Below, one piece after another: positions 4,931-29,941 of a DNA stretch of 64,000 bases. The position numbers and the translations under genes were made by a program. The stretch is from Lytechinus pictus. Lineage: Eukaryota. Within the stretch, counting starts at the first letter, position 1, and each line of letters starts with the position of its first letter. The stretch covers positions 3,906,001-3,970,000 of the forward strand of contig NC_087251.1 of assembly GCF_037042905.1 (NCBI RefSeq), written 5' to 3'. The notes below the pieces were generated by a model that saw only the letters and a program-made list of their open reading frames with translations, made no database searches and was not told the origin of the DNA.

Positions 4931-6044
4931 TGCAAAAATAAGTAAAATCAGTGCATGGTATTTACAATAATACATTGTACATGTCTGTATGTCAGTCGCA
5001 TCCACCAAAATGGTAGCAGTCATTATAGATTTGAAGATTGGAAATGAAGGATAGGCCTGCCGAAAAATGAAGAGCTTGATTCCAAAAGGGGCTAAATCCA
5101 CTTTTGACCAAATTGATTTTTTATACAAATATATGTATCTTAGACGTGGGAATGCAACATATCGCATTTGATTTTTTTGGGAAAGGTTAGTAAAATTATA
5201 TTGCAAATTTGAGTTTTGTTCTAAAAGGAGCTAAATCCGCTATACGGTTATATCCACTATACAGTTATTCATTCATATATATTTTTTTCTTTTTCTAATT
5301 TTCAATGGATAAAGCATCAGAAAACATGTGAAATGTACTCTGCTAGCCATATTCATGTGTTTTATGTTCGATTTCCAATATCAAACATGTTTCAATCGGC
5401 AAAAATTGACGTTTTCAATCCATGAAAAATAGAATTTAAAAAATTCTTTAACAATTCATAATGATTTAAAAAAACATGATTTAATTAATCTTAGATAACT
5501 ATCATAAATAAAATAATGAAATCAAATGAAGAGTTTTCGCAAAATCTCAATTCACTCGGTTCTCTTTTTCTGATTTTGATCAAAATTAACTGGATAATTT
5601 CCTTTTCTTTTCTCCATTCCTATTTTCTCTGATTCACATCCCTCAATAGGGATCCCACCCGAGTGGAAAGTTTCTTAATAGAAAAAAGAGAAACCGATAA
5701 GTTGAAAGTTTGAATGAATCAGGATAAGCAATATGGCAGTATTGTCTATTTGACCTTTCACATGGGTGAATTCATAGTGGTGACAATTTCTCCATGAGAA
5801 ATGTCATTTTCCAAAGGTTATAACCAGAATTATATATTTTTCTTCTATACATGTGAGGACATAAATGGAACAATAAGACTTCGAGGGAATGTGGGCCCAG
5901 AAAAAAACCCTCATATTCCTGATTTTTAACTACATTCATGATTTGAGTTTTCTTGGCCACTTGTCACTATTATTATCTTTTTAGATCATAATTTCTTATT
6001 CCTGGTCCGATTTCATTCAAAATTTATCAATTCTGCTTCAACTC

Positions 6045-6430
6045 ATACATTATCACAAATGTTTGATTTCTCTTTGATATGTGACTAAAATTTTCTGCTT
6101 TTTATCTCTCTCCTTCAACACATTCATTTTATCACAAATGTTTGATTTCTCTTTGATGACTAAAATATTCTGTATTTCTTATCTCTCTCCTTCAACACAT
6201 ACATTATCACAAATGTTTGATTTCTCTTTGATATGTGACAAAAATGTTCTGCTTTTTATCTCTCCTTCAACACATTCATTTTATCACAAATGTTTGATTT
6301 CTCTTTGATGACTAAAATATTCTGTATTTCTTATCTCTCTCCTTCAACACATACATTATCACAAATGTTTGATTTCTCTTTGATGACTAAAATATTCTGT
6401 ATTTCTTATCTCTCTCCTTCAACACATAAC
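6045..6430. repeat. Minisatellite, five ~76-bp units
   Basis: ATCACAAATGTTTGATTTCTCTTTGAT at 6052, 6131, 6206, 6283, 6358; two variants ordered A-B-A-B-B. Confidence 0.95.
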
Positions 6431-7547
6431 TTCATTTTAGTTTTTTTTTACATGTTTTTTTTTTTCAACTACTCGTATTCACATCTTCCTCATACACACC
6501 ACTTCTGTCTCTCTCTTTATTTTGCACATGTGTATCTAATCCCCTGTCCATCTCACAAACTCACCCCCTCCCCTGAGCCGGTGACCCCCCCCCCTCCCTC
6601 CCGCCCTCTTTACATGTATACTTCTTTACCCCCCCCCCCATCTCCACTTCTATTTACTATCTTCCTAGCTATATTTATGAAGAGACACTTGGCTTAAATA
6701 AAGCATAATGCATTCAAAATAATGAGAACAGAATCAACTGATTAAACAGAATAAATTGATTATTAAAGTTTAATTTCCAAAGTTACTATCAATATACAGT
6801 AAGATGAAAAACAAAGTTACATATACATGTACAGTATCAATTTTGCTATGCATACATTGCAGTCAAAATATGTCAAAAGTGATGATGATACAAGCTTCCA
6901 AATGCAATAACAAGTGTCCAATGAAATCCAATCCGTATAGGTAAAGTATATAAGAAAAAAATAAGTTTTTATACCATTTGCAATCATTGCATGGTAAAAA
7001 TTCATTCAGATTTGTTACATTTGCTTCAAGCAAAATTTGATTTAATTATAACCAATGTTGAGGTAAAAATTTTGAAAATTTACAAGATCATTTAGTTTGC
7101 TTCAAGCAAAACTTGAATTCAGTAAAAAGTGCCCCAAATATATCTTATCTAAAATATATAATGCAATTTTTGCTTAAATATTTTGTTTAAAATGTTAAAA
7201 ACGCTTACAAGCAGGTGGTATAATTACCACAATTACTGCAATTGAAGACTTTAAATATAATAAAATGCATTCTTTGAATAATTATCAATCAAAACCACCA
7301 ATGAACTTGATGAATGCATGAGATGATCATATGACTAAAATTTGAATAGAAATAAATGAAGTGCTATAAGAAATAAAAAAATTGAAAATTATAAACTATG
7401 CTTGTTTCCAAGCAATTGCAATAAATACTGGTTATCAATTTTCACCCAGACTGGCTGTTGTAATTGGAAACAACATGGTCCTTGGACAGAGTCTCTTTCT
7501 CCAGATTGAATTGTCTTTAAAAAGTCAATGTTCATTGTTCAATGTCA

Positions 7548-8312
7548 TCACGAATTCTGTTCCTGCTCTTGCTGGTCAGCTAGATCACTCCATGATCTCC
7601 TATCATCATCCATCTCCTCCTCCCATTCTTCGTCTTCGTACTCATCATCGTCATCATCACTCTCCTCGCTCTCGTGAACTTCCGAAGCTGGGATGCGATC
7701 CCAGACATGGTACTTGTAGCGGTGGTAGAGACCATCTGGTTCCTCTGAAAGCCTCTCAGGAAGCGACCCTCTCATCCATGATTCGCTATCATCGGAGAGG
7801 TACCACACGTACTCAGGAGGAGGCTTGGTATGGACAACACCAACAATAGGACCTTGACCTTCTCTCACATGTTCCATGGCGCTGCCGTCACGACCTGGCT
7901 CAGGAAGGAAGCGGAGATCAGTTGCACTGTAGTGGATGCGACGGTCTCGTTCCTGGCGTGTGCGTTCAACAGACTCCTGGATCTCCCTCCAAAACTGTTC
8001 TTCGCCTTCACGATCCGCATCCGATATCCACTCTTCATCTGACTCGAACTCTGAAGAAGACACATCATCATCATCCTTCTTTCTTTCTGGCTCTGGTTCC
8101 TCCTCAACATCATCTTCCAAGTCTTCATCGTTCCATAATGGGTATCGGCCATGACCTCTGCAGGCGTGGTAGCAGGTGTGACCTTCTTTATTGCTGCACA
8201 TGAAGAGAGATTCCCCGGCTCTAGTAAGGGCTGAGAAAGGTGGATCAGCAGTGGTAACCTCAGGTGCTACATGTTGTGCAGTTCTGGAGGATGAACGCAA
8301 GATGGGTGCCAT
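7548..8312 (-). CDS. Orphan acidic Trp-rich protein, 254 aa, single coding exon (exon 2 starts at 8320)
   Basis: 765-nt open frame from ATG at 8312 (context ATTATGG) to TGA at 7548-7550. It is preceded by a strong acceptor ((CT)n...TTTTTACAG, AG at 8322-8321). The upstream part of the track ORF (8393-8321) is intron sequence. No recognisable family. Confidence 0.75.
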   Translation of the reverse strand: MAPILRSSSRTAQHVAPEVTTADPPFSALTRAGESLFMCSNKEGHTCYHACRGHGRYPLWNDEDLEDDVEEEPEPERKKDDDDVSSSEFESDEEWISDADREGEEQFWREIQESVERTRQERDRRIHYSATDLRFLPEPGRDGSAMEHVREGQGPIVGVVHTKPPPEYVWYLSDDSESWMRGSLPERLSEEPDGLYHRYKYHVWDRIPASEVHESEESDDDDDEYEDEEWEEEMDDDRRSWSDLADQQEQEQNS

Positions 8313-8825
8313 AATGGAAGCTGTAAAAAGACAAGAGAGAGAGAGAAAATATTTGTTAGCTTGAGGACAATTTGAAACTAAATACTGGTACAAAGTAAGC
8401 TTTCCATGATTTATAACAAAGGTATAGTCAAGACCACTTTGACATATTTCATGATCTGCCTGAAGGCTTGTATTATACTATTATTAGGCTCTATATTGAA
8501 AATTCAATGACCATCATTTATGATAAAATTACAGAATTCATAGATACATAATTGATTAATAATGGCATATAAATAAATAAACGCTCCTAATGTAATGACG
8601 GCTGACATGTGTGTTAACGGTTATACATTACAATGCAATGAATATGCATGGTACGGGTATCAACAGTGCAAGAAGATAAGATCGGGAAATAACAGCCGCC
8701 ATTATTTTTATACATTTTGTGGCATATAACTTATATTCTCTTGATCCGATCCCTCACTGAACTGTACTTCATCGCCATTAAGATGTCCTGTATGAAAAAT
8801 AAGTGTTGTAAAGTATGATACTCAC

Positions 8826-8890
8826 CTAATGATAATATCTTGTGAAGTAGCAATTCAACTGACAATGTTACTGCGTGTGTAGTATATATA
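8826..8890 (-). promoter_or_regulatory. TATA box + Inr + 35-nt non-coding exon 1 of the orphan gene
   Basis: TATATATA at 8890-8883; Inr TCAGTT with its A at 8860, 30 nt downstream; exon 8860-8826 has no ATG and ends in the consensus donor AG|GTGAGT; 505-nt intron to 8321. Confidence 0.7.
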
Positions 8891-11594
8891 TCTCCGTATG
8901 GCCTGGTCGGTGATACTACATCGACAGGAGAGTTTAGTGGAAGCGTCGAACAGTCACTGTATTCAGTTGTGTTGACTTTGGAACGAATGAAAATGTTCTT
9001 CTGCTTTTCCAGTTAAATAAGCTGAGAAATATGCCCTCATCAACAACACTTGACCAATCAGGGTCTGGTGTTGTGGCTAAACAATAACTAAGGTCTAAGG
9101 AGGGGTGCAATTATCACCCCTTTAATTAAGGTATCGATAATCGCGAGTTTATCCGCGTTTCTTCAACACGACGACGGACACACTACCCGTCCGTTGGAAT
9201 GTTGTGTGTATATCCGTGTGAGCATTATACAGCACGGCTTTATTTCGCGCGCTTTGTTATATTTATATGTGTGGGCGAGGGGTACTTTGTATACCCTTTG
9301 ACCCTTTTGTCTCGCCACCCCACCCCAGTGGTATATCGGAGGCGGGATCGGAGGATGGGGAAGGGGATACCAGGTACACCATAAAGGATACCAGAAGATA
9401 TCAGCTTTCTAAAAAAATCAATTGCACTAAATTAAGTGAAACTAAAAAATGACGAGCAATCATTGTGTAACTGAACCAGTTCAGAGTTTGATATATATAC
9501 ATGGACCCTACCATACATACATGATATCATGGAAACTGATCACCACATACACTTTTTTTCAATAATCAGTTTTAATTTTTGTACTATGTACATGCTCAGC
9601 TGCAATCAATTTGATGTTATTCTTCTGTAAGTATATTTTTTCGGATTATGTAGGCCTGTTTTTTTTTTTTTCTTTAACTGAACGGTCAATAAAGACAACA
9701 AACTAAAACAAACAAAAATGTGTGTACAGTGAAATGAAAAGTCGACTACAAAACAAAAATTATGTGTAAATTGGATTCCTCGCTATGAAGTATAAAATCA
9801 CCTTCACTACATGGACCTAACCGATGCATGCAAAATAGTTTCTCAGTTTGATTTGAAAGGTAGATTTAGAAGCCAGGATTTTCTAATAACTTTTCTTTAA
9901 TTCAGTAAAAATCAAATAAATACAAATACATGTGCCATTGAATTTGAACCAAACTTAATTAGAATAAAAAATAAATTACACGATTTTTTTTTTTTAAAGT
10001 TGTTAATCGAATAGCATCACTCTTATACGGGTAGATACAGAATTTGCCCTGAATAATCGAGGCAAATAGAGGAGATCAAAATAAAATGACTAGCGCCGAA
10101 CAGCAATATTTGTATACGAATGACAAGACAAATGCCAATTTGAATGGTTTATTGCTTGTGCATTTCCATTTCTTATGGGTCATATAAACCTATCAAAATA
10201 ATCTATTCGTTTTCAAGAAAATCCAACGTAAAATGAAAGAAAATTACGATAGAAATAACAGTAAATACATGAAATAAGGGTAATGATTCATTATAATGGC
10301 AAAAGGAAAAATGACTATTAATAATCATGATCCATTGATGTCTATCAACGAATATTAATGCATAATGCTCAATGTAAATTTAAAACATTAAGTATGTATA
10401 TATTGTGAGACAACGAATTGTTAGTTTTGGGATGCCGTTAAACCATATGGAAGTTTGAAATATGGTGTGGTATATCAAATTTGTGAATATTCATTTAGTT
10501 ATCAATCAAAGTTTCCACGGGTGATGACAGAAATTTCATGTAAACATACCAGCATTTTTGTTATTCCTGATGATTTACATATGACGGATAAAATGAGATA
10601 TCACTACATATACGGTCGTACAGCCTAACTGACAAATAATATAATTGTGAATTAAAACGATATTTTTTTTTTTGCATGGGAAGCCAAGACGTGATGCTAA
10701 GATCTAAACAGTTTCATGGTAAAGATAAAATCTTAAGAATATTGAGTTTGACGAAACATCCTACTTTTTGTTGATTGTTGGTTGCAGTCGAGAGAAAATA
10801 ATCGTCTACAGTTACGTGGTAAGATCAAGCTATATTTATTTTCGATACGGAATAACATAACTCGTGTATCCACCCATATGGAATAACACAAATCAGCAAT
10901 TTTGTGTTGGAGATGCTGTGTCCCCCTGTATTCGGGTAGTTATGTGATAGATGAATCTTGTTTTTCTTTTTAAGTTCATTGATAACTGATTCGTGTATTT
11001 TGTAAAATTTGATTTTATTCTTTTCGTATATAAGATTTATTGGACAATCTGATTTTGTTCTTCAACAGAGCATGTTGATCTATCACAATAAGGTTTAATG
11101 TAATTTTGTGGTTATAGGCATCGATTTACTTGTAAACAGGTCGTCTTTACTGGACTTTTACACATTTGTATATTTTCCGTCCTTGAAGAGTTGGTGACTA
11201 TTCACAGTATTAATATTCGGTAATGGGAAATTATAATTTAATCCATCCAAACTACAAGAATTTGAATTATTAAACTCAGACGAGAAAGTGGCGATTAGCG
11301 CAAGAAAAAAAATCCCCATGGGGTTTGAGTATTGGATATAGCGCACTATTTCGGAAATTTATTGTAAGTGAGCAAAGCGAACAAGTCAAAGAAAGATATA
11401 CTCCCAAATAAAATATTGATTTAAAGAGTTCGAGGTTTGACGTGGACATAATCATAACATATGACAAATATTTTAAGTAAAATCGAACTATCATGTTGAA
11501 AGCTACGTAATGATGAATCCCCCCTTCATTTTCTGGGACGGCAATGATGTTTCAGTTTAAGGTTCTCCTAATGCGCCAGTGTCTACCAATTATT

Positions 11595-11710: not shown

Positions 11711-11899
11711 GCCTCATACCGTTTAGCAGTTCAGTGCACAAATGGCAGCATGTATATAGTTTATAAATAATCGCAGGGATTAATTTATTCCGGCATTAAA
11801 ATATTATTTTGGCAAAGATATCATATATGAAGTTTTGCTGCAATGACTGTGTTTATAATTCACCGTGATTTCGTACAGGGCAATCTGCGCGTTATCGTC

Positions 11900-12034
11900 A
11901 TGGAGAGCGCGGTCGTTCTACCGTGGATGATCATGATCATATCCGTGATCGTACCCGTGGTCGTAGCCGATACAGCACCACTTCATGTAGCAGATGAGAG
12001 GGAGAATGAAAACTATTACCTGGTTGGTTTGAAG
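11900..12034 (+). CDS. Subtilase exon 1 (signal peptide, start of I9 propeptide)
   Basis: MESAVVLPW...APLHVADERENENYYLVGLK, donor GTTTGT, phase 0. Confidence 0.85.
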
Positions 12035-15000
12035 GTTTGTTCTTGACAGATTTGTACAATCTGTACTTTAAACTGCTTTGTAATTGGATATTTAATTGGA
12101 CCATTACGAACTTAACAACATTGAAATTGGCAATACATAATGAAAAATCATCTCATAATGACTAATTCAAACGTTTCAGAAAAATGATATATCATGTACA
12201 TAAAAAAGGGTCATTCTATATTCGCTTTTATACTACTTGGCATGCTTGGTGTGTTCAGGGTGTTTGCTAGATGATGGGGCGTAATTTAATTGAGACTGTT
12301 ATGCGGGGGACAAAACACATTGTACAAAAATATGATATCTATAACGAAGGTGTTTTTTTTTTTACTGATGATTAAAGATGCTGAAAAATTTTCAAGCATA
12401 TACATTGTAGATTGAACTACTTTGGTTTATGGCCTACGTTGTAAAGATATGAGCTAGACACTCTAATGAGCAAGACAAACCTTTTATTGATCGGAGGAAC
12501 AATTAATGGACCAGAGTCTATTAAAAACTCTGCTTTTGTAGCGGGACAGGATGCGCGCGAATTCTTTTATTTCCAGATTAAAAGTTCCTCATTATTCCGC
12601 CTCAAAAGAAAAAAAACACAGTATGTCGTAATTAACCCATCTTAATTAAGACTTGCTTCGATCGACACAAAAGGACAATACTTAACAAGAATTAAGATGT
12701 TGATAAATATAAAAGATAATTGGAGGAGATAGGAGACACCTGGTACTATCATGAACCACTTTTTCAATGGAAAACAAGGTAATATGACGCCTCATTCAAT
12801 ACAAGAAAAAAAAAGATTTTTTCATCAGAAGGGTGGAAACGTGTGTGATGGGGCAGGCGGAGGTGGGGGGGGGAGGGGTCGTCTCTATATTTGGATGTCG
12901 CAATTACTGGTTGCATTTTTTTCAACCAGCAGATTTCATACAGACAACAATCGAATCACTTTTATAAACACCTTTTTGCACTTTCTTAGCAAAAGCTTGA
13001 ACAATTTGTGTATTTTTTTTTAAATACATTTCCAAGAACAAAAATAGTATAATCATTTTTCAACATTACATAACAATAAGCAACGCATCAAAATACATGC
13101 ATCATTGTGTAACATTATATAATTCAAATATATATACATNNNNNNNNNNNNNNNNNNNNNNNNNNNNNNNNNNNNNNNNNNNNNNNNNNNNNNNNNNNNN
13201 NNNNNNNNNNNNNNNNNNNNNNNNNNNNNNNNNNNNNNNNNNNNNNNNNNNNNNNNNNNNNNNNNNNNNNNNNNNNNNNNNNNNNNNNNNNNNNNNNNNN
13301 NNNNNNNNNNNNNNNTATAGGAGACCGCACAGTCTTAAGCTTGTAGCTTGAAATTGATGGAGACCTCGAAAGGGAATTAAGGGAAGAGAAAACCAGACTA
13401 CAGTGCAATGATAATAAGTTAATAATATATACATGTAGACCGCTTATTCATTCGTCATAATGGAGCAATATTTTTTTTTATTAAGTGTTTACTATTACCC
13501 AATTTATACAAATATAAATGCATTGTATTTTCATGAAAAGCAAGAAACGTTTTGTCTATTTATTCATTTATAATACTTTAGAGGATAGATTATTCAGATT
13601 ACAACACAATAATATTGTTCAGCTTCAAATCTTTTATTAAAGACTTACATAAAAATATTTAATGTGTGAAATGATTAAGACAATTACGTAAGCAAGTTTG
13701 AATATGAGCGTTGTGCGTGCAAATGAAAGTGCAATTACAGCGCAGGGACTTATGAGGTAATTAAAAAAAACGTTTTTTTTTAGTGTTTCAATGATAAAAG
13801 TAATTCGGTACTCTATCGAATGAAGACCAAGTTCACCATGCACACCGCAACAAAATTTGAATCAAATTAATTCAGGAAAATAAAACATGCCTAACATTGA
13901 AAATTGAATACACTGTATGTGAAATTTTAAAGCTATTCAAATTTAAAGTTTCGCTTGATTCCACAAATTGTATATCGCTACCCATGAAATCATTACATTT
14001 CTCACGTCATCCAAGGCAATACCCAGAAAGTTTTTCTGGGAGGCAGGACGCCTAAAAATTTATCGAAAAAACCTCAAAAGCAGGGGAGTGAAACGACCGA
14101 GTTTGTCAATTAGGCGCATTTCTAATAGTAAAATTGAACGATTTCTTTCACCCTTTTTGTGAATTTTGTGAAAATATTTGTAAAAAATGTAGGTTTTCTG
14201 GGGGTATGTTTTAAGTATGTTCAAGTATGTTTTTTATTGATCTTCTTACATTTGAATTTTAATGTTTTGTGTATAGCTTTTTAAATATGGAAATTGAATA
14301 AAGACTATGCACAAGGGCGATCAACAAATGACATTCTTTATCTATAGAGAATATGAAAATACTAATTTATCAATTAGTTCATTTTATTTTCAAAACAGGC
14401 AACTCCACGTGTTCGACGAACAATTTGATTATTTGTTTTTTTTTACAATTATATAGGAAGAAACTTCGAAATAAAAAAGTGCAGACTGAAGGCCTCTATA
14501 CATGTATAGCAAAAAAATGATATATAAATATTTCATCTTCCATCCGATTCGAATATACTTAATATGCTTGTTTGGATTGTATTATTTTGTTTGAATAAAT
14601 TTGTGGTCGAATAACAACGTGTATATAAGCATGCATCGAGTGTTATTATATTACAATTTCCAAGATTACAAGATTCTTATTTGTTATCGACAAGGTAGAT
14701 TCCAAACGTGCAAGTCCTAGCTTTTCTATTTCATTGACAGTATTAACATTTTGTAATAAAGAATAATTAATCAATCCAAACCAATTTGAATAATAGTGTT
14801 TAACTATGAGAAACTGACGACCCGGCACCCATATAATTATGAAGGGCGAATGTTCGAACTTTTAAGATTTTATTTCGCAAAGAAAGTCCTCTCTTTAATT
14901 TTAGGTTAAGATTTGTATCATAGTCATCGACAAGGTCAATTTCAATAGTGTTATATAGCTATCAATTTCTTCTTATCTTTTGTAAATATAAAGAATTAAA

Positions 15001-18000
15001 GTTCTATTAATAACAATAACACATTTTATGGCCTTGGGCAGTTGGGTGATAATGAGTTGCAGGTGGCCGGATTCAGGACCTTTTCATTTCGTCATAATAA
15101 AACCCGGGAATAAAACAAACCCATTTGAGCGGTTTGAGCCAGCAATAATATGCGCCAATATGCGATTCATCATGTGCTAATCCGGTATGTCCCAAACAAG
15201 ACAAAAGGGTAGATCCATGCAAACAAGGAGCTCCTTGATGCAAACGACGATTTTCTGATGATCCACGTTATTGCGAAAGGTTCTGTTTGAAAAGATTTCG
15301 GTGGGTATTTCGGGGGGGGGGGGCATATAATTCCAGGGGTATGTTCTCTCATTATTTGATTCTCAATCCTCTTTTTTTATCATTATATAAAGCATATAAA
15401 TGCATTTTTTTTATTGGTGAAATATAATTAGGGTTACAAAAATCTCGGCCCACTTTGTTGCAACACTGGGAAAGTTTGATTTTATATAAAAATGTATCTT
15501 AAAAATACCATGCTACAGTGTGTAACTTACATGTGACAGCGTTTTTTTTTTTTTTTTTTTTATAAAAGAAGTTTGACTAGTTTTGGGAATAGAAGGGTGT
15601 AATCATAAAACTGCAGAAACGGAGGAAACGCAGAATTTTAGAACAGTATACCTTAATCATGTCCATATTGATATACTGTAATCAATAATAAAAACGAAAA
15701 ATTAACATTGGGGATCGACGCTAATATAGGCCTATTTTATGTGTTGTCATTGAAAAAAAGTAAACCCTTGGATACACTCAACTCCTTGTTTCTCTTTTCT
15801 ATGTATGTTCTCACGTTTTTTCTCAGTAAACTCTGCCGTAATTCTTGATATGTTTGTTTCTAGGCTGACCATGATGTTGATAATTGGGTGGAGACCTTCC
15901 ATTCGCATGTCCGTGAATCTACATTCAATGGGAAAATAACAACAAAGAATGATCGAATTCTTACAGCAGAACTCGACCCAGAAGCTCTTTCGCATGTAAG
16001 GAACTATTTAAATACTTTTTTTGTAAACGAGAGAACTGAAATACTTCATTTAGAAAATTTACAAACTTCTGGGTGAGTAGGTTTATAGCCAAGTCCCTTC
16101 GTTCCATCCTGTTACATAGTTGACTGTATAATATGTTTGATCGCTTGTCCATTCGCAGATTTTTTTTGGCTGGGGGGGGGGGGGCAGCACGTGTAAACTT
16201 TTTCGAAAAAACTCGAAAGTTTTCCAAATTTCTGGGGGTGCTACTACCCCCCCCCCCCCGCTACGTACGGTCATGTTTGATTGCTGCACCTAACGATCAA
16301 TACAACCCCGTTACATCTGTACTCAGCAATCATGTACTATTTACTTACTTAATATGTTGCTATGTACGCCTATGCATATGACACTAAAATTATCAGTAAT
16401 AGTTAATAAATCATATGAAAAATAAATAATTAAATCATTTCTAAAGTGATCCATTAGATCATACAATACAAACCACAGAGTACATCTGGTAGAATAACTG
16501 TAAAAGTTACAATAGATAATTATGTGAGTAGTAATTCCCGGGCAAAACTATAAGACTATATTGAAAAGTAACATTTATAACTAATAAAACAAGGAGCTCA
16601 GTTCATACTAAACATGCCATGAAATCTTAATTTGTGCCAGTTTTGGTGTTGGGAAAGAGAATTAAGATCGCTCGGGATTTTCGGGAAAGTTAGAAAAAAC
16701 TGCTTTTTGACACATTGTTGTAAGCCCTTGAAATGTTCACATCGATTTAGAAAGGTATTATAATGGTAGTATAATTTTTTTCTTTATTGTTTGAACACAC
16801 TTGATTTTTTTAAAACATAATATGGGAAAAGGTACGTGAGATGGAAGGTGTACTATATGTGGAGGAGGATGGCGTTGTGTCTCTCTCGGATGTTTTAATC
16901 TATAAAGAAGAAATATATGAGGATGCCATTGAAAACTGGGGACTAGATCGAATAGACCAGGAAAAGCTACCCCTAGATGATCGCTTTGAGATATCAGGTG
17001 AGAGAAGCCTAGGAGAATTGTGTGTCATCACCATTATCACCATTATCATCATTAATATCATTATTATTGTAGCTATTTTAATCCTTTAAAATTCTATGCT
17101 TTGAATAGTACATTCTCGCATTTTTTCCCCCAAACGGTTCTGGTATCACTCGAACAATGAATGGCAACGCTTCTGAAATCGGTCGCCCACCAGTTTGATG
17201 AATTTCCGAAGCATACATTTTCTAAAACATAATTTGCATGACAAAGCCTAAAAATCAAATCATGTTCTAATTTTTCGCAAAAACGTTCGCATGCCCATGA
17301 ATGTTGAGATCAAGCCATCAAGGGCACAACAGCGAAAGATATATCATCACAAATCCCCCTCCACCTCTTCCTTATTTAGATATCGGGGCGGATGGGCACA
17401 TTTTCTCGATGAAAATTTGACAAGTAAAAAAAAAGTGGGGTCACCAAAAATTGAAGGTCATTTAGTCCACATTAAATTTGACAAGAACTTGGAAGAAAAA
17501 AGCCCTCACTTTGAAAAAAAAAGGGGGGGGCACATTAATTTGGGTAAGAACGGCATATCTACTCTAATTTTTTTATTATGGCTCTCAAAGGGCGGGGGAT
17601 GCACGGGCCGGATGTACACCCCCCCCCCCTCCTTGGATCCGCCACTGATTTAGATCATTATATCCATTTGACCATTCCCAATGTTATCATACCGAATCTC
17701 TCACAGGTACTGGAGAAGGAACACATGTTTATATTTTAGATTCTGGTATCCGAGCTACACATGAAGACATCAGAGGAAGAGCTGATGCTCCTTTTGATGC
17801 TTACGGTGGAAATGTAAGATTTACAAACATCAAGTTAAACGAACCTTTCTTCTTTATTCCCTTTTTTTTCTTCTTAATTTTGCCTATTATTTTACCCCTT
17901 TCTATAATGTAATCATAGGGGGGGGGGGGAGACCGCACTTCATTTTATTTCCTCATGTAGCCTAAAGCATATTACCAGGTGGCAGGTGAGCGAAAGCTTG

Positions 18001-21000
18001 TGACACTTGGAAATAGACGAAAATTAACAAAAGAGTGGTCTTTTGCACTGCGCGGGGGGGGGGGGGGGTAGATAGGGAAAAGAAGCCAAGAACCTCCCCA
18101 CCCCAATTAATTTTCAAACCTATACTTTACGTCTAGCAAAATCCCTGAAATTCTAAATAATATGTACCAAATGATGCAAATAATTATATTTAAAATGGAT
18201 ATAATCAACAAAAACTCTATTGATTAGCACGGTCACCTTGCTCACTCAATATAATCCTTAGTACTGCCATGATGCAAAACGAATAAAACATGTTATACTA
18301 TTGAGAATATAATAATTATGCAAGTTTTACTAAGGCATTTTCACTCTTTTACATCAGTTTTTATAGTTCCAAATGGAAAGTAATTCTTTTCCTCCTGTTA
18401 TTCAGTAAACTTATATTGTTTTGATAAGGACAATTGCATTGAAAACAATATATAATTGACAGATGTAAGGTTGTGGAACCCTAATGTTGTTTTTTGTTCT
18501 GTTTTTGTTGTTGTTGTTGACTTGATCTTTAATATTGAGAGCCAAAGTTAATGATAATCCAAAACCCAGAATACAAAGATCAATAGACTTTTTGGTGCAA
18601 TTTTTGTTTGTGATTTCAAATTGTTCTTTGCTAACGGACAGGGATCTGATATTGATGGGCATGGTACTCATTGTGCTGGGGTCATAGCAGGTACCAAGTA
18701 CGGTGTAGCAAAACGAGCTTATGTACATGGTATCAGGGTCATCAAAGAAAATCGAAAAGGATCCGTCTCTGCAGTTATTACTGGTAAGTAATGCGCAATA
18801 TTTGGTAATGTATGATCAGTGGTGGATCCAGGGACATTTCCGGCCCATGCTCTCCTTATGAGAGCCATGAACGATATTTGTAATTTCACTTTGGCGTTTA
18901 TACGCAAGTGTGGCCCTCTTTTTGAGAGTGACAACAAATATCTTTTTATGGAATGTATGTCGTTCATACACAAACGAGGACTTTTTTTGCTTTTCAAATT
19001 GTACTCTTCATTATACAACCTTTTTTGGGGGTCAAATTTTCCTTGTGAATATGTGCACCCCTTATGTGTATGACCCCCCAAAAAATAAATAGAAATAAAA
19101 TAAGATAATGAATAGATTATAGATAGATTAAAGATAGATAGATAGAAAGATAGATAGATAGATACTCTTCGTAGATAATAGAAGGTTCTAATAAACAAAA
19201 ACAATATTTAGGCCAAAAACAACATTAGCCGTCATATCTTCAAATGTTAACAATGAATTATTTAATGTAAAAAGGCATTCCTTTTGGAAGATTAGAATGT
19301 TAAAATATTGATGTCTATATATTTTCCGTCTTGACGCGTGCCGTATTGCCTCCAACAATTATTAACTGCAGAGGTCTTATTTAGATTTTTAGGGGAAATG
19401 ATCAGTTCCAATTTCCTTCAAATTATACGTTGTATATTTCGGATGGATCAAATTCTTATGTTTTCTATGTCAATAGCAATGAACTGGGTGGCAAAGAATG
19501 GATCCCGTCCTTGTATAGCATCAATGTCTTTCAGTGGAAAAGGTTCTAAATCACTGGACACCATGGCTAAAGCCCTCTACGACAGCGGATGTGTATTGTC
19601 AGTAGCAGCAAGCAATGAGAATAATGATTCTTGTGCTAAGTCCCCTGCTAGAATAGATGAAGTAAGTATACTAGGAATAAATGAGGTCTATCATTAATTC
19701 CCACCCTTGAATGATAGAGGGTTTGTGATTTTTAGTCTAGTATATCAACAGCGTTTCTGAAAAGCAGTAGTAGGCCTATATTGTTGAGCGGGCGATGAAA
19801 GTTGAAAATATCATAGTCTCTATAAATAATGGATAAATCTATGACGGCCTAGTTTTGTTAACTGCCTTGCTAAATGGTGAATTCTGATAAGTTTTCCAGA
19901 AGTCAGAATATTGTAAGGTTCCCGGTAAGGCCTCCGAAGGCTAGAACTATGCATCATAATCTTTGAAGCATTCAGAAGATATTCTAACTTTGACTGATCA
20001 GGGAAGTTCCCTGGACTGAAATTACCATGATAATTTCCCTAATAATTTTTTTTACAATACCATTATTTCTTATACATTCTAATGTTCTTCAGGTGATCAC
20101 TGTCGGGGCAACAGATATGGATGACCATCGAAGTTTCTTCTCTGATTTCGGACATTGTGTTGATATATTCGCACCTGGTCGAGATATACTTAGTCTTGAT
20201 TACCATGCCGATGACGGTGTTAAGAGCATGAGCGGCACGTCAATGGCCACGCCCTTTGTAACAGGTATTATATTGGTCGATACTCTTTTTGAAAAAAAGT
20301 TTCAAAACGGGGCCAGGTTCACCTAACAAAAAAAAAAGAAAAAAGGGTTAATACTTATAATACTGATTTATAGGATTAATACTATAATAATAATAATATT
20401 CAGAGGGCGCTGTATATAGATGTTTCACAGTTGGGCTAACTATGTAAACAATGAATCCATAGATTACTATGCTAGTACTAAGAAACGATTGGTCTTAAGC
20501 CAAGAATTTGAATGTTTCTGTGCAGGGAGCCAGTGGCGGGTCCAGTACCCTTCCCTTTTGAGCGCCATATAGTTTTTAGGGTAATATGCTATCGAAGATT
20601 AATTTAAAAAGTCCCCGTTTTTGTTGACAATCCTGGATCCGCCCCCTGGAGGGAGCATTTTGTATAATGGGTTGGGAGCTTGTTACAGCAAACGCACGAT
20701 CACCATCAGGTTTTCGTGCGAGGGAATTTGAGGAAAAATATGAGGGAAGCACTGCGGTTCGGGAAGGGGGGGGGGGCACAGCCGGCCCGTGCCCACCCCC
20801 CTTTGAGAGGCACAATGAAAATTTGTAATGTAAAAATGCCGTTAGAACACAAGTGTGCCCCCCTTTTAAAGTCGTGGACAAAATGTCCTTGATTTTTTGG
20901 TTGAAAACCTTTTTGTTCGTTAGTTTGTCAAATTTTCCTCGGGAAAATGTGCCCCCCTTGAAAAACCTTGGATCCGCCACTGGTGCGAAGGTATGGTCGC

Positions 21001-26808: not shown

Positions 26809-26857
26809 CCGATTACATCGCATTGCCGATTCACAGTTGATCATATCGACAACCACC

Positions 26858-27229
26858 ATGCCTGCCAAAGCACAAACCGCTGGAAAGAAGGGATCCAAGA
26901 AGGCTAAGGCCCCCAGGCCTAGCGGAGACAAGAAGAGGAGAAGGCGCCGAAAGGAAAGCTACGGAATCTACATTTACAAGGTTCTGAAGCAGGTTCACCC
27001 CGACACTGGTATCTCAAGCCGTGCCATGTCCATCATGAACAGCTTCGTCAACGATGTCTTCGAACGTATTGCCGGTGAGGCTTCCCGTCTTGCCCAGTAC
27101 AACAAGAAGTCCACCATTAGCAGCCGTGAGGTCCAGACCGCTGTCCGTCTCCTCCTCCCCGGTGAATTGGCCAAGCACGCCGTCTCTGAGGGCACCAAGG
27201 CCGTCACCAAGTACACCACCTCCAAGTAA
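26858..27229 (+). CDS. H2B: Late (replication-dependent) histone H2B, 123 aa
   Basis: [51 protein letters not shown]...KYTTSK; intronless; true start is ACCATG at 26858 (the track ORF starts at an upstream TTG); N-tail resembles sea urchin late H2B. Confidence 0.99.

Positions 27230-29506: not shown

Positions 29507-29941
<435 letters not shown>

Follow-up and report, generated by a model that had tools for sequence, protein, structure and literature searches.

Is an acidic, Trp-studded open frame that resembles no protein family a real gene and, if so, where do its transcripts begin and what might its product do? The question is raised by a locus on the minus strand of a 64,000-nucleotide (nt) stretch of the sea urchin Lytechinus pictus genome (assembly GCF_037042905.1, contig NC_087251.1, positions 3,906,001 to 3,970,000 of the forward strand; this whole stretch is called the window, and all positions below are counted from its first letter). 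From the sequence alone, positions 7548-8890 had been described as an orphan two-exon gene driven by a TATA box and an initiator and encoding an acidic protein with a Cys/His cluster; we refer to this description as the sequence-only reading. The locus does contain a real protein-coding gene of two exons, which is transcribed, spliced and strongly conserved; about this model we have very little doubt. Its transcripts start further upstream than had been proposed, probably from a promoter that is conserved between sea urchin genera. Public databases already list the gene as an `uncharacterized protein', so that the gene model itself is nothing new.

Gene model and expression

The frame of 254 codons plus TGA is open from the ATG at 8312 to the stop codon at 7550-7548. 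The ATG has an A at position −3 and a G at +4, and lies 8 nt downstream of a pyrimidine-rich acceptor (...ctttttacag/c at 8321/8320), so that exon 2 begins at 8320; the donor AG/GTGAGT is at 8826/8825. Frame, start context, donor and acceptor were all verified in the sequence, and the translation contains the features attributed to it: a Cys/His cluster (C39-x5-H45-x-C47-x-H49-x-C51-x2-H54), two Asp/Glu tracts and eight Trp residues. The encoded protein of 254 amino acids (29.8 kDa, isoelectric point 4.3) has 72 Asp and Glu residues, three Cys and ten His. A genome search found one copy of the gene in the 811.7-Mb assembly.

Three stranded, ribosomal RNA-depleted RNA-sequencing (RNA-seq) runs from the same species (X19, X20 and X21) were mapped to 6450-10400. 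In X19 and X21 the depth is about 100 across 7506-8297 in exon 2, averages 55 and 90, respectively, over the exon 1 bin 8826-8957 and is 3.6-34 in the intron. All exon 1 reads have the orientation that most stranded libraries give to minus-strand RNA, and no antisense reads were found on the gene body (7374-8957) in these two runs. The sequence-only reading had expected an inducible or tissue-specific gene, and expression is indeed strongly sample-dependent: at equal sampling 707 and 943 reads were placed in two runs, compared with one in X20. The difference among samples exceeds 700-fold, the gene being fairly well expressed in some and practically silent in another.

The proposed splice from 8826 to 8320 is borne out by the depth contrast between exons and intron and by the ends of individual reads. 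Eight X21 reads ending at 8826 run on into GTGCCATAATGGAAG; this loose end is the start of exon 2 (8320-8306) in reverse complement, so that the 8826/8320 junction is read directly. Independent support comes from a Logan contig of 1,895 nt from a Strongylocentrotid run (L008), which joins CACGATAAG to GTTCCACTATCTACAATGG, the homologous donor and acceptor of the Strongylocentrotus purpuratus locus. The acceptor lies 8-15 nt 5' of the ATG in all five species compared.

The intron itself is unevenly covered. Its 5' half (8562-8825) is at 20-34x, approximately one quarter to one third of the exon depth, and its middle (8430-8561) is at 3.6-13x. The coverage of the 5' half could result from pre-mRNA in a total-RNA library, from partial intron retention or from an alternative downstream donor. 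The RNA reads are also polymorphic: a 6-nt insertion, CTCCGC, after 8891 is carried by 30 of 55 reads in X19 and by 2 of 95 in X21, 8851 C>A is fixed in X19 and present in about half of the X21 reads, and 7381 A>T is nearly fixed in both. The coding change 7668 G>A is synonymous, and 7513 is a further polymorphic position. These differences could be alleles rather than editing.

Orthologues and purifying selection

The other assemblies compared were those of L. variegatus, S. purpuratus, Diadema antillarum and D. setosum. RefSeq orthologues are present in each: XP_041469710.1 (LOC121419353) in L. variegatus, with 98% identity; XP_800107.1 in S. purpuratus, with 79%; and XP_071499060.1 and XP_071506480.1 in D. 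antillarum and XP_072165192.1 in D. setosum, with 54-55%. The orthologues share full-length alignment, neighbours and the position of an intron just 5' of the ATG, and the window protein is itself present in NCBI and UniRef. The term orphan is therefore apt in the sense that no known family is recognized, but not in the sense of a protein without relatives, as annotated orthologues exist. All of the RefSeq orthologues are uncharacterized, with no experimental description, and literature searches by accession and by automatic name gave no relevant paper.

Selection on the frame was measured by the Nei-Gojobori method as the ratio of nonsynonymous to synonymous substitution rates (dN/dS). Between the window and L. 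variegatus dN/dS is 0.08 (dS of 0.08), between the window and S. purpuratus it is 0.14 (dS of 0.98) and between the two Diadema species it is 0.12 (dS of 0.12). The sequence-only reading had named disrupted frames and a dN/dS near 1 as the signs that would speak against a gene; none of the six sequences compared has a broken frame, and at a dN/dS of 0.08-0.15 the gene is under purifying selection. Together with the expression and splicing seen by RNA-seq, this confirms that the gene is real.

Transcription start and promoter

In the sequence-only reading, transcription began at about 8860 and produced a 35-nt first exon that was free of ATG. The arrangement on which this was based exists, as TATATATA at 8890 precedes the A of TCAGTT (8860) by exactly 30 nt, but it is not the promoter, as it lies inside exon 1. 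Stranded reads span 8826-8976, with a depth at 8891 of 55 in X19 and 95 in X21. Molecule ends pile up at 8969 (X19) and 8976 (X21), and none are listed near 8860; the depth is down to 3.6-6.6 across 8958-9089 and reaches zero across 9090-9221. Because reads reach 8969-8976 and cover 8891, exon 1 is approximately 150-163 nt long and not 35. Transcripts start at about 8976-8990, some 125 bases upstream of the earlier placement. The exact start is probably the A at 8988 in TCATTC: the read ends at 8976 and 8969 fall 12-19 nt inside this position, and RNA-seq under-covers the last 10-20 nt. The longer exon is not free of ATG either. It contains an ATG-TAG mini upstream open reading frame (mini-uORF) at 8921-8916, which is probably without function since it is absent from L. 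variegatus and S. purpuratus.

The promoter of the gene is probably a conserved set of CCAAT box, TATTTAA and TCATTC (Table 1). The first T of TATTTAA precedes the A of TCATTC by 31 nt. The inverted CCAAT box CCCTGATTGG is identical in L. variegatus, S. purpuratus and D. antillarum and stands approximately 35-45 nt upstream of the TATA box in every species; the pair of CCCTGATTGG and TATTTAA recurs 5' of the D. antillarum gene, the species to which the comparison of CCAAT and TATA boxes in Diadema refers. In the alignment with L. variegatus and S. purpuratus, the S. purpuratus counterparts of TATATATA and TCAGTT are GCCAACCAGC and CCGGCT.

These elements belong to a conserved block of about 340 base pairs (bp). 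A blastn search aligned 9327-8986 of the window with 8834-9181 of the S. purpuratus sequence (L005) at 67% over 377 columns, and no other non-coding DNA in the approximately 2.5 kb that precede the ATG was aligned to S. purpuratus by blastn. The alignment contains long invariant runs, while dS to this species is near saturation, and a 44-nt block that opens with ACCACTGGGGTGGGGTGGCGAGACAAAAGGGTCA (9332-9289) differs from S. purpuratus at two bases. An E2F-like site, TTTCGCGC, lies within the conserved run AACAAAGCGCGCGAAAT and is invariant in the window, L. variegatus and S. purpuratus. The motif occurs three times in the window, compared with 1.7 expected, which is not above chance; we regard the site as a lead only and do not claim cell-cycle control.

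At equal ATG-relative coordinates the upstream regions of the two Diadema species (L006 from D. setosum and L003 from D. antillarum) are offset by several hundred bases, which points to an indel between the two species in the intron of the 5' untranslated region (5'UTR) or in the promoter flank.

The 3' end

In X19 and X21 the depth drops from about 95 near 7540 to about 6 at 7373 and below, and fragments end at 7364; no AATAAA or ATTAAA hexamer was found just upstream of 7364. Same-strand reads at a depth of 1-6 continue to approximately 6850, and L008 extends for about 830 nt beyond its stop codon, through a block that is conserved with 6927-6839 of the window. There is probably a longer transcript form with a distal 3' end.

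Runs from a second organism (X5 and, by word share, X6-X14) contribute short contigs of 31-60 nt at 6752-6993, with a depth of up to about 12,800; X5 has nothing on the coding region. The stretch 6752-6993 is single-copy in the genome and partly conserved with S. purpuratus. Our best guess is that these deep contigs are 3'-end-tag reads that mark a distal poly(A) site (ATTAAA at 6774-6769), the alternative being an independent abundant small transcript. An Rfam search over 6400-9400 returned nothing meaningful.

Conserved blocks of the protein

Constraint is concentrated in two blocks of the protein, as judged from nine sequences and from the ratio of nonsynonymous to synonymous differences per site (pN/pS). 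Block A, which carries the Cys/His cluster, has 28 of its 34 residues invariant and a pN/pS of 0.06 against S. purpuratus and 0.085 against Diadema. Block C has a pN/pS of 0.09 against S. purpuratus, and its TKPPPEYVW segment is invariant in all nine sequences from three genera. Every Cys and most of the invariant His fall within these two blocks: all three Cys and six His of the protein are invariant, the three Cys and three His of the cluster among them. The acidic tracts, with a pN/pS of 0.26-0.50 against S. purpuratus, vary in length and sequence and keep Ser-x-x-Asp/Glu (CK2-type) sites and embedded aromatic residues (DEEW, FW-x-x-I, EEW and SWS). A basic cluster resembling a nuclear localization signal, KRKRPRK, is found in Diadema, while the other species have only RKK or SKK. 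By eye we see no N-terminal hydrophobic signal or membrane segment, and the protein is therefore probably intracellular. A secreted or biomineralization role was rejected for want of such a signal.

Two AlphaFold2 models were obtained, from a three-row alignment (predicted local distance difference test score, pLDDT, of 44.5) and from a nine-row alignment (pLDDT of 39.6). They agree on a hairpin (35-40/46-52, both strands within block A), a helix (98-122), strands at 167-172, 178-182 and 196/202-208, and a helix at 241-253. A fold search with the better model returned noise, with template-modelling (TM) scores of no more than 0.20 among the AFDB clusters and a best PDB match with a Z-score of 4.4, below the usual background, and we claim no fold. 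The predicted complex of residues 25-62 and 150-212 with zinc had an interface score (ipSAE) of 0.02, which speaks neither for nor against the packing of block A on block C.

Searches for a family were uniformly negative, in line with the earlier statement that none could be recognized. Pfam-A hmmscan with E-values of up to 10 found no family for the window protein and only noise for the nine family members. An exhaustive phmmer search of 1.84 billion cluster representatives returned the protein's own cluster only, and the three echinoid clusters were all that word-indexed searches returned, whether queried with the protein, the profile or block C alone; in both cases the coverage of other echinoderm classes is unverified. 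The ESM Atlas holds no relative, and sequence searches of the PDB by family profile and by pieces (including residues 22-64) gave no match. Among approximately 15 billion proteins the only relatives are from echinoids, as expected if the gene is lineage-restricted. The gene is a taxonomically restricted one, being selected, expressed and without a detectable homologue outside sea urchins.

A possible role for the protein

On a strand, H45, C47, H49 and C51 would face one side, as would befit either a metal site or a surface for tight packing. A small folded core is probably made up of the Cys3His3 hairpin (residues 35-54) together with the beta-rich PPxY block (154-208), and might be held by a metal ion such as zinc. 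The acidic tracts, which are under weak constraint, resemble disordered arms and could hold basic or WW-domain partners. The protein might then be a non-enzymatic binding adaptor or chaperone with acidic arms and a possibly metal-stabilized core; judged from its sequence this is a tentative suggestion, and one that we hold with more doubt than conviction. The metal-binding adaptor or acidic activator of the sequence-only reading would be compatible with the data. A bolder version is that the hairpin and the PPxY beta block are an undescribed metal-binding fold, and that the protein is a sea-urchin-specific regulator (an acidic chaperone or adaptor, for example) switched on in particular tissues or stages through the compact CCAAT/TATA promoter with its E2F-like site. 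Such a fold would have arisen in the echinoid lineage, because the gene is common to Lytechinus, Strongylocentrotus and Diadema; we regard this version as unlikely. Taken as a whole, the gene model combined with the functional reading is likely to be the best explanation of the locus.

Several points weigh against this explanation. In L. pictus itself the splice is supported by the loose-end consensus and the depth contrast, because the read mapping listed no joint and skipped a CT-repeat (8322-8358) at which reads `seem cut'. Both AlphaFold2 models are of low confidence, and the functional reading is without a family, fold or partner: no Pfam zinc-finger profile matches, and the spacing of the Cys/His cluster corresponds to no named type. 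A nuclear location is not assured either, because the basic cluster of Diadema is reduced to RKK or SKK elsewhere.

Table 1. Features of the locus, in window coordinates, with the evidence for each.
Feature	Positions	Strand	Basis
Probable distal 3'UTR extension, minor in these runs	6752..7363	-	Weak same-strand reads; L008; ATTAAA at 6774-6769
Proximal 3'UTR, main form in X19 and X21	7364..7547	-	Depth decay; fragment ends at 7364
Coding sequence	7548..8312	-	Open frame; intact in five other sequences; dN/dS 0.08-0.15
Block C, residues 154-208, predicted beta-rich, invariant PPPEY (PPxY)	7689..7853	-	Alignment; low-confidence strands in both AlphaFold2 models
Block A, residues 27-60, Cys3His3 cluster in predicted beta-hairpin	8133..8234	-	Most constrained part
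5'UTR intron, 505 nt, GT..AG	8321..8825	-	Depth contrast; loose end at 8826; joined homologous junction in L008
Exon 1, non-coding, ~150-163 nt	8826..8988	-	RNA-seq depth; donor AG/GTGAGTA kept in S. purpuratus and L. variegatus
Transcribed 5'UTR with TATATATA (8890-8883) and TCAGTT (8862-8857), formerly read as promoter	8857..8890	-	Read coverage; unconserved
ATG-TAG start-stop mini-uORF in exon 1	8916..8921	-	Read from sequence; absent in L. variegatus and S. purpuratus
Initiator-like TCATTC, A at 8988	8985..8990	-	TCATT invariant in three species
Conserved proximal promoter/cis-regulatory block, ~340 bp	8986..9332	-	Adjoins mapped transcript start; aligns to S. purpuratus
TATA box TATTTAA	9013..9019	-	TATATAA in S. 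purpuratus, TATTTAA in Diadema
Inverted CCAAT box CCCTGATTGG	9054..9063	-	Unique in window (0.12 expected)
E2F-like site TTTCGCGC	9243..9250	+	Within conserved run AACAAAGCGCGCGAAAT; invariant in window, L. variegatus and S. purpuratus

Alternative explanations

Two alternatives would change the gene model. If the TATA box at 8890 and the initiator at 8860 were the promoter, with a 35-nt exon 1, or in a weaker form a second, minor promoter inside exon 1, the spacing of TATATATA and TCAGTT would be accounted for, as would the climb in depth from 8891 (55 and 95) to 8851 (78 and 113). Such a climb, however, is expected near a transcript end. The reads cover 8891-8976 and their molecule ends lie at 8969 and 8976, away from 8860; S. 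purpuratus has kept the upstream TATTTAA/TCATT pair but neither of these two motifs, and the 6-nt indel polymorphism touches the supposed TATA box. We consider use of this promoter, in either form, to be very unlikely. The absence of a known domain and the acidic low-complexity content might also suggest a chance open reading frame (ORF), a non-coding transcript or a decaying pseudogene, and there is a 155-amino-acid antisense ORF at 7382-7849. A dN/dS of 0.08-0.15 with saturated synonymous change, a frame that is intact in six of six sequences and the lack of antisense reads make this explanation scarcely credible; the antisense ORF was rejected, as it lies on the strand without reads.

The other alternatives concern the origin and the role of the gene. 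The sequence-only reading had allowed for a gene carried in by a virus-like or transposable element, whether domesticated or a passenger ORF, and the intronless coding sequence, the confinement of homologues to one animal class and the tandem repeats nearby (6032-6428) would fit this. Against it, the gene is present in one genomic copy, no terminal direct or inverted repeats frame it, no relative was found among the IMG/VR viral contigs and the neighbours are the same in the four other echinoid assemblies. As the neighbours are conserved, any capture would predate the split of these orders and has left no trace, and we judge an origin of this kind to be highly improbable. A different role within the same gene model is that of a WW-domain ligand: PPPEY would recruit ubiquitin ligases of the NEDD4 type or WW proteins of the YAP type, and the remainder of the protein would serve as a cargo or regulator surface. 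The invariance of TKPPPEYVW in nine of nine sequences is what such a ligand would show, but PPPEY lies inside a block that is predicted to be beta-structured rather than in a disordered tail, which makes its accessibility doubtful, and the residues flanking it are equally invariant, suggesting a structural constraint. This role seems decidedly unlikely. The reading that we prefer remains a spliced, conserved gene whose product is tentatively an adaptor or chaperone.

Genomic neighbourhood

The order Peptidase_S8 gene, studied gene, nidogen-like gene is common to Lytechinus, Strongylocentrotus and Diadema. In both S. purpuratus and the window the Peptidase_S8 gene lies upstream in divergent orientation (in the window its exons fall within 11837-20326). 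In each of the four other assemblies the nidogen-like gene (NIDO/G2F/EGF/LDL-receptor-B) lies downstream and is encoded on the strand of the studied gene.

In the window, stretches aligned to the S. purpuratus Peptidase_S8 locus, together with two ORFs (19338-19697 and 20027-20326), mark subtilase exons on the plus strand at 11837-12043, 15859-16003, 16821-17007, 17705-17817, 19338-19697 and 20027-20326. The Pfam Peptidase_S8 match is on 20027-20326. The 5' end of this subtilase gene is approximately 2.9 kb from the start of the studied gene, divergent as in S. purpuratus. Further upstream, 18-21 kb from the gene, are intact histone genes for H2B (130 amino acids, 26837-27229, plus strand) and H2A (124 amino acids, 29567-29941, plus strand), both confirmed by Pfam. 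The tandem array at 6032-6428 has about five copies of a 75-77-nt unit with a higher-order period of 152 and 86-93% matches, and is shared in part with L. variegatus. A run of N at approximately 13130-13400 is seen as runs of X in two ORF translations.

Significance and comparison with known systems

The analysis corrects the start site and points to a compact promoter shared by Lytechinus and Strongylocentrotus through conservation, with a CCAAT/TATA core that extends to Diadema. It also adds context in the form of proof of splicing, on/off expression between samples and purifying selection centred on an unclassified Cys/His block. The gene is a clean case of an old, constrained, echinoid-restricted family without a characterized function, and is a reasonable candidate for a knockout or localization study in Lytechinus, where such tools exist.

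The automatic name of the S. purpuratus orthologue, `FK506-binding nuclear protein-like', invites a comparison with the FK506-binding nuclear proteins (the yeast Fpr3/Fpr4 type and nucleoplasmin-like FKBPs). What these have in common with the urchin protein is compositional only, namely long Asp/Glu tracts and a low isoelectric point. They possess FKBP_C and nucleoplasmin-like domains, whereas Pfam at E-values of up to 10 finds neither in the window protein, and none of the nine urchin family members has an FKBP match. The name is an artefact of acidic low-complexity composition.

A further comparison is with the acidic chaperones of histones and other basic proteins. YL1, Chz1, ANP32E and nucleoplasmin are acidic chaperones with aromatic anchors in their acidic tracts, and the urchin protein resembles them in having acidic disordered tracts with conserved embedded Trp and Phe and with Ser-x-x-Asp/Glu sites; the H2A and H2B genes in its neighbourhood are a coincidental parallel. 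No homology was found, the best Pfam match to YL1 having E = 1.5 in one member only, and the urchin Cys/His and PPxY blocks have no counterpart in these families. With respect to small zinc-binding modules (zinc knuckles, ribbons and treble clefs), the urchin spacing fits no Pfam zinc-finger model and, by sequence, no solved chain; the likeness to them lies in invariant Cys and His residues carried on a predicted beta-hairpin.

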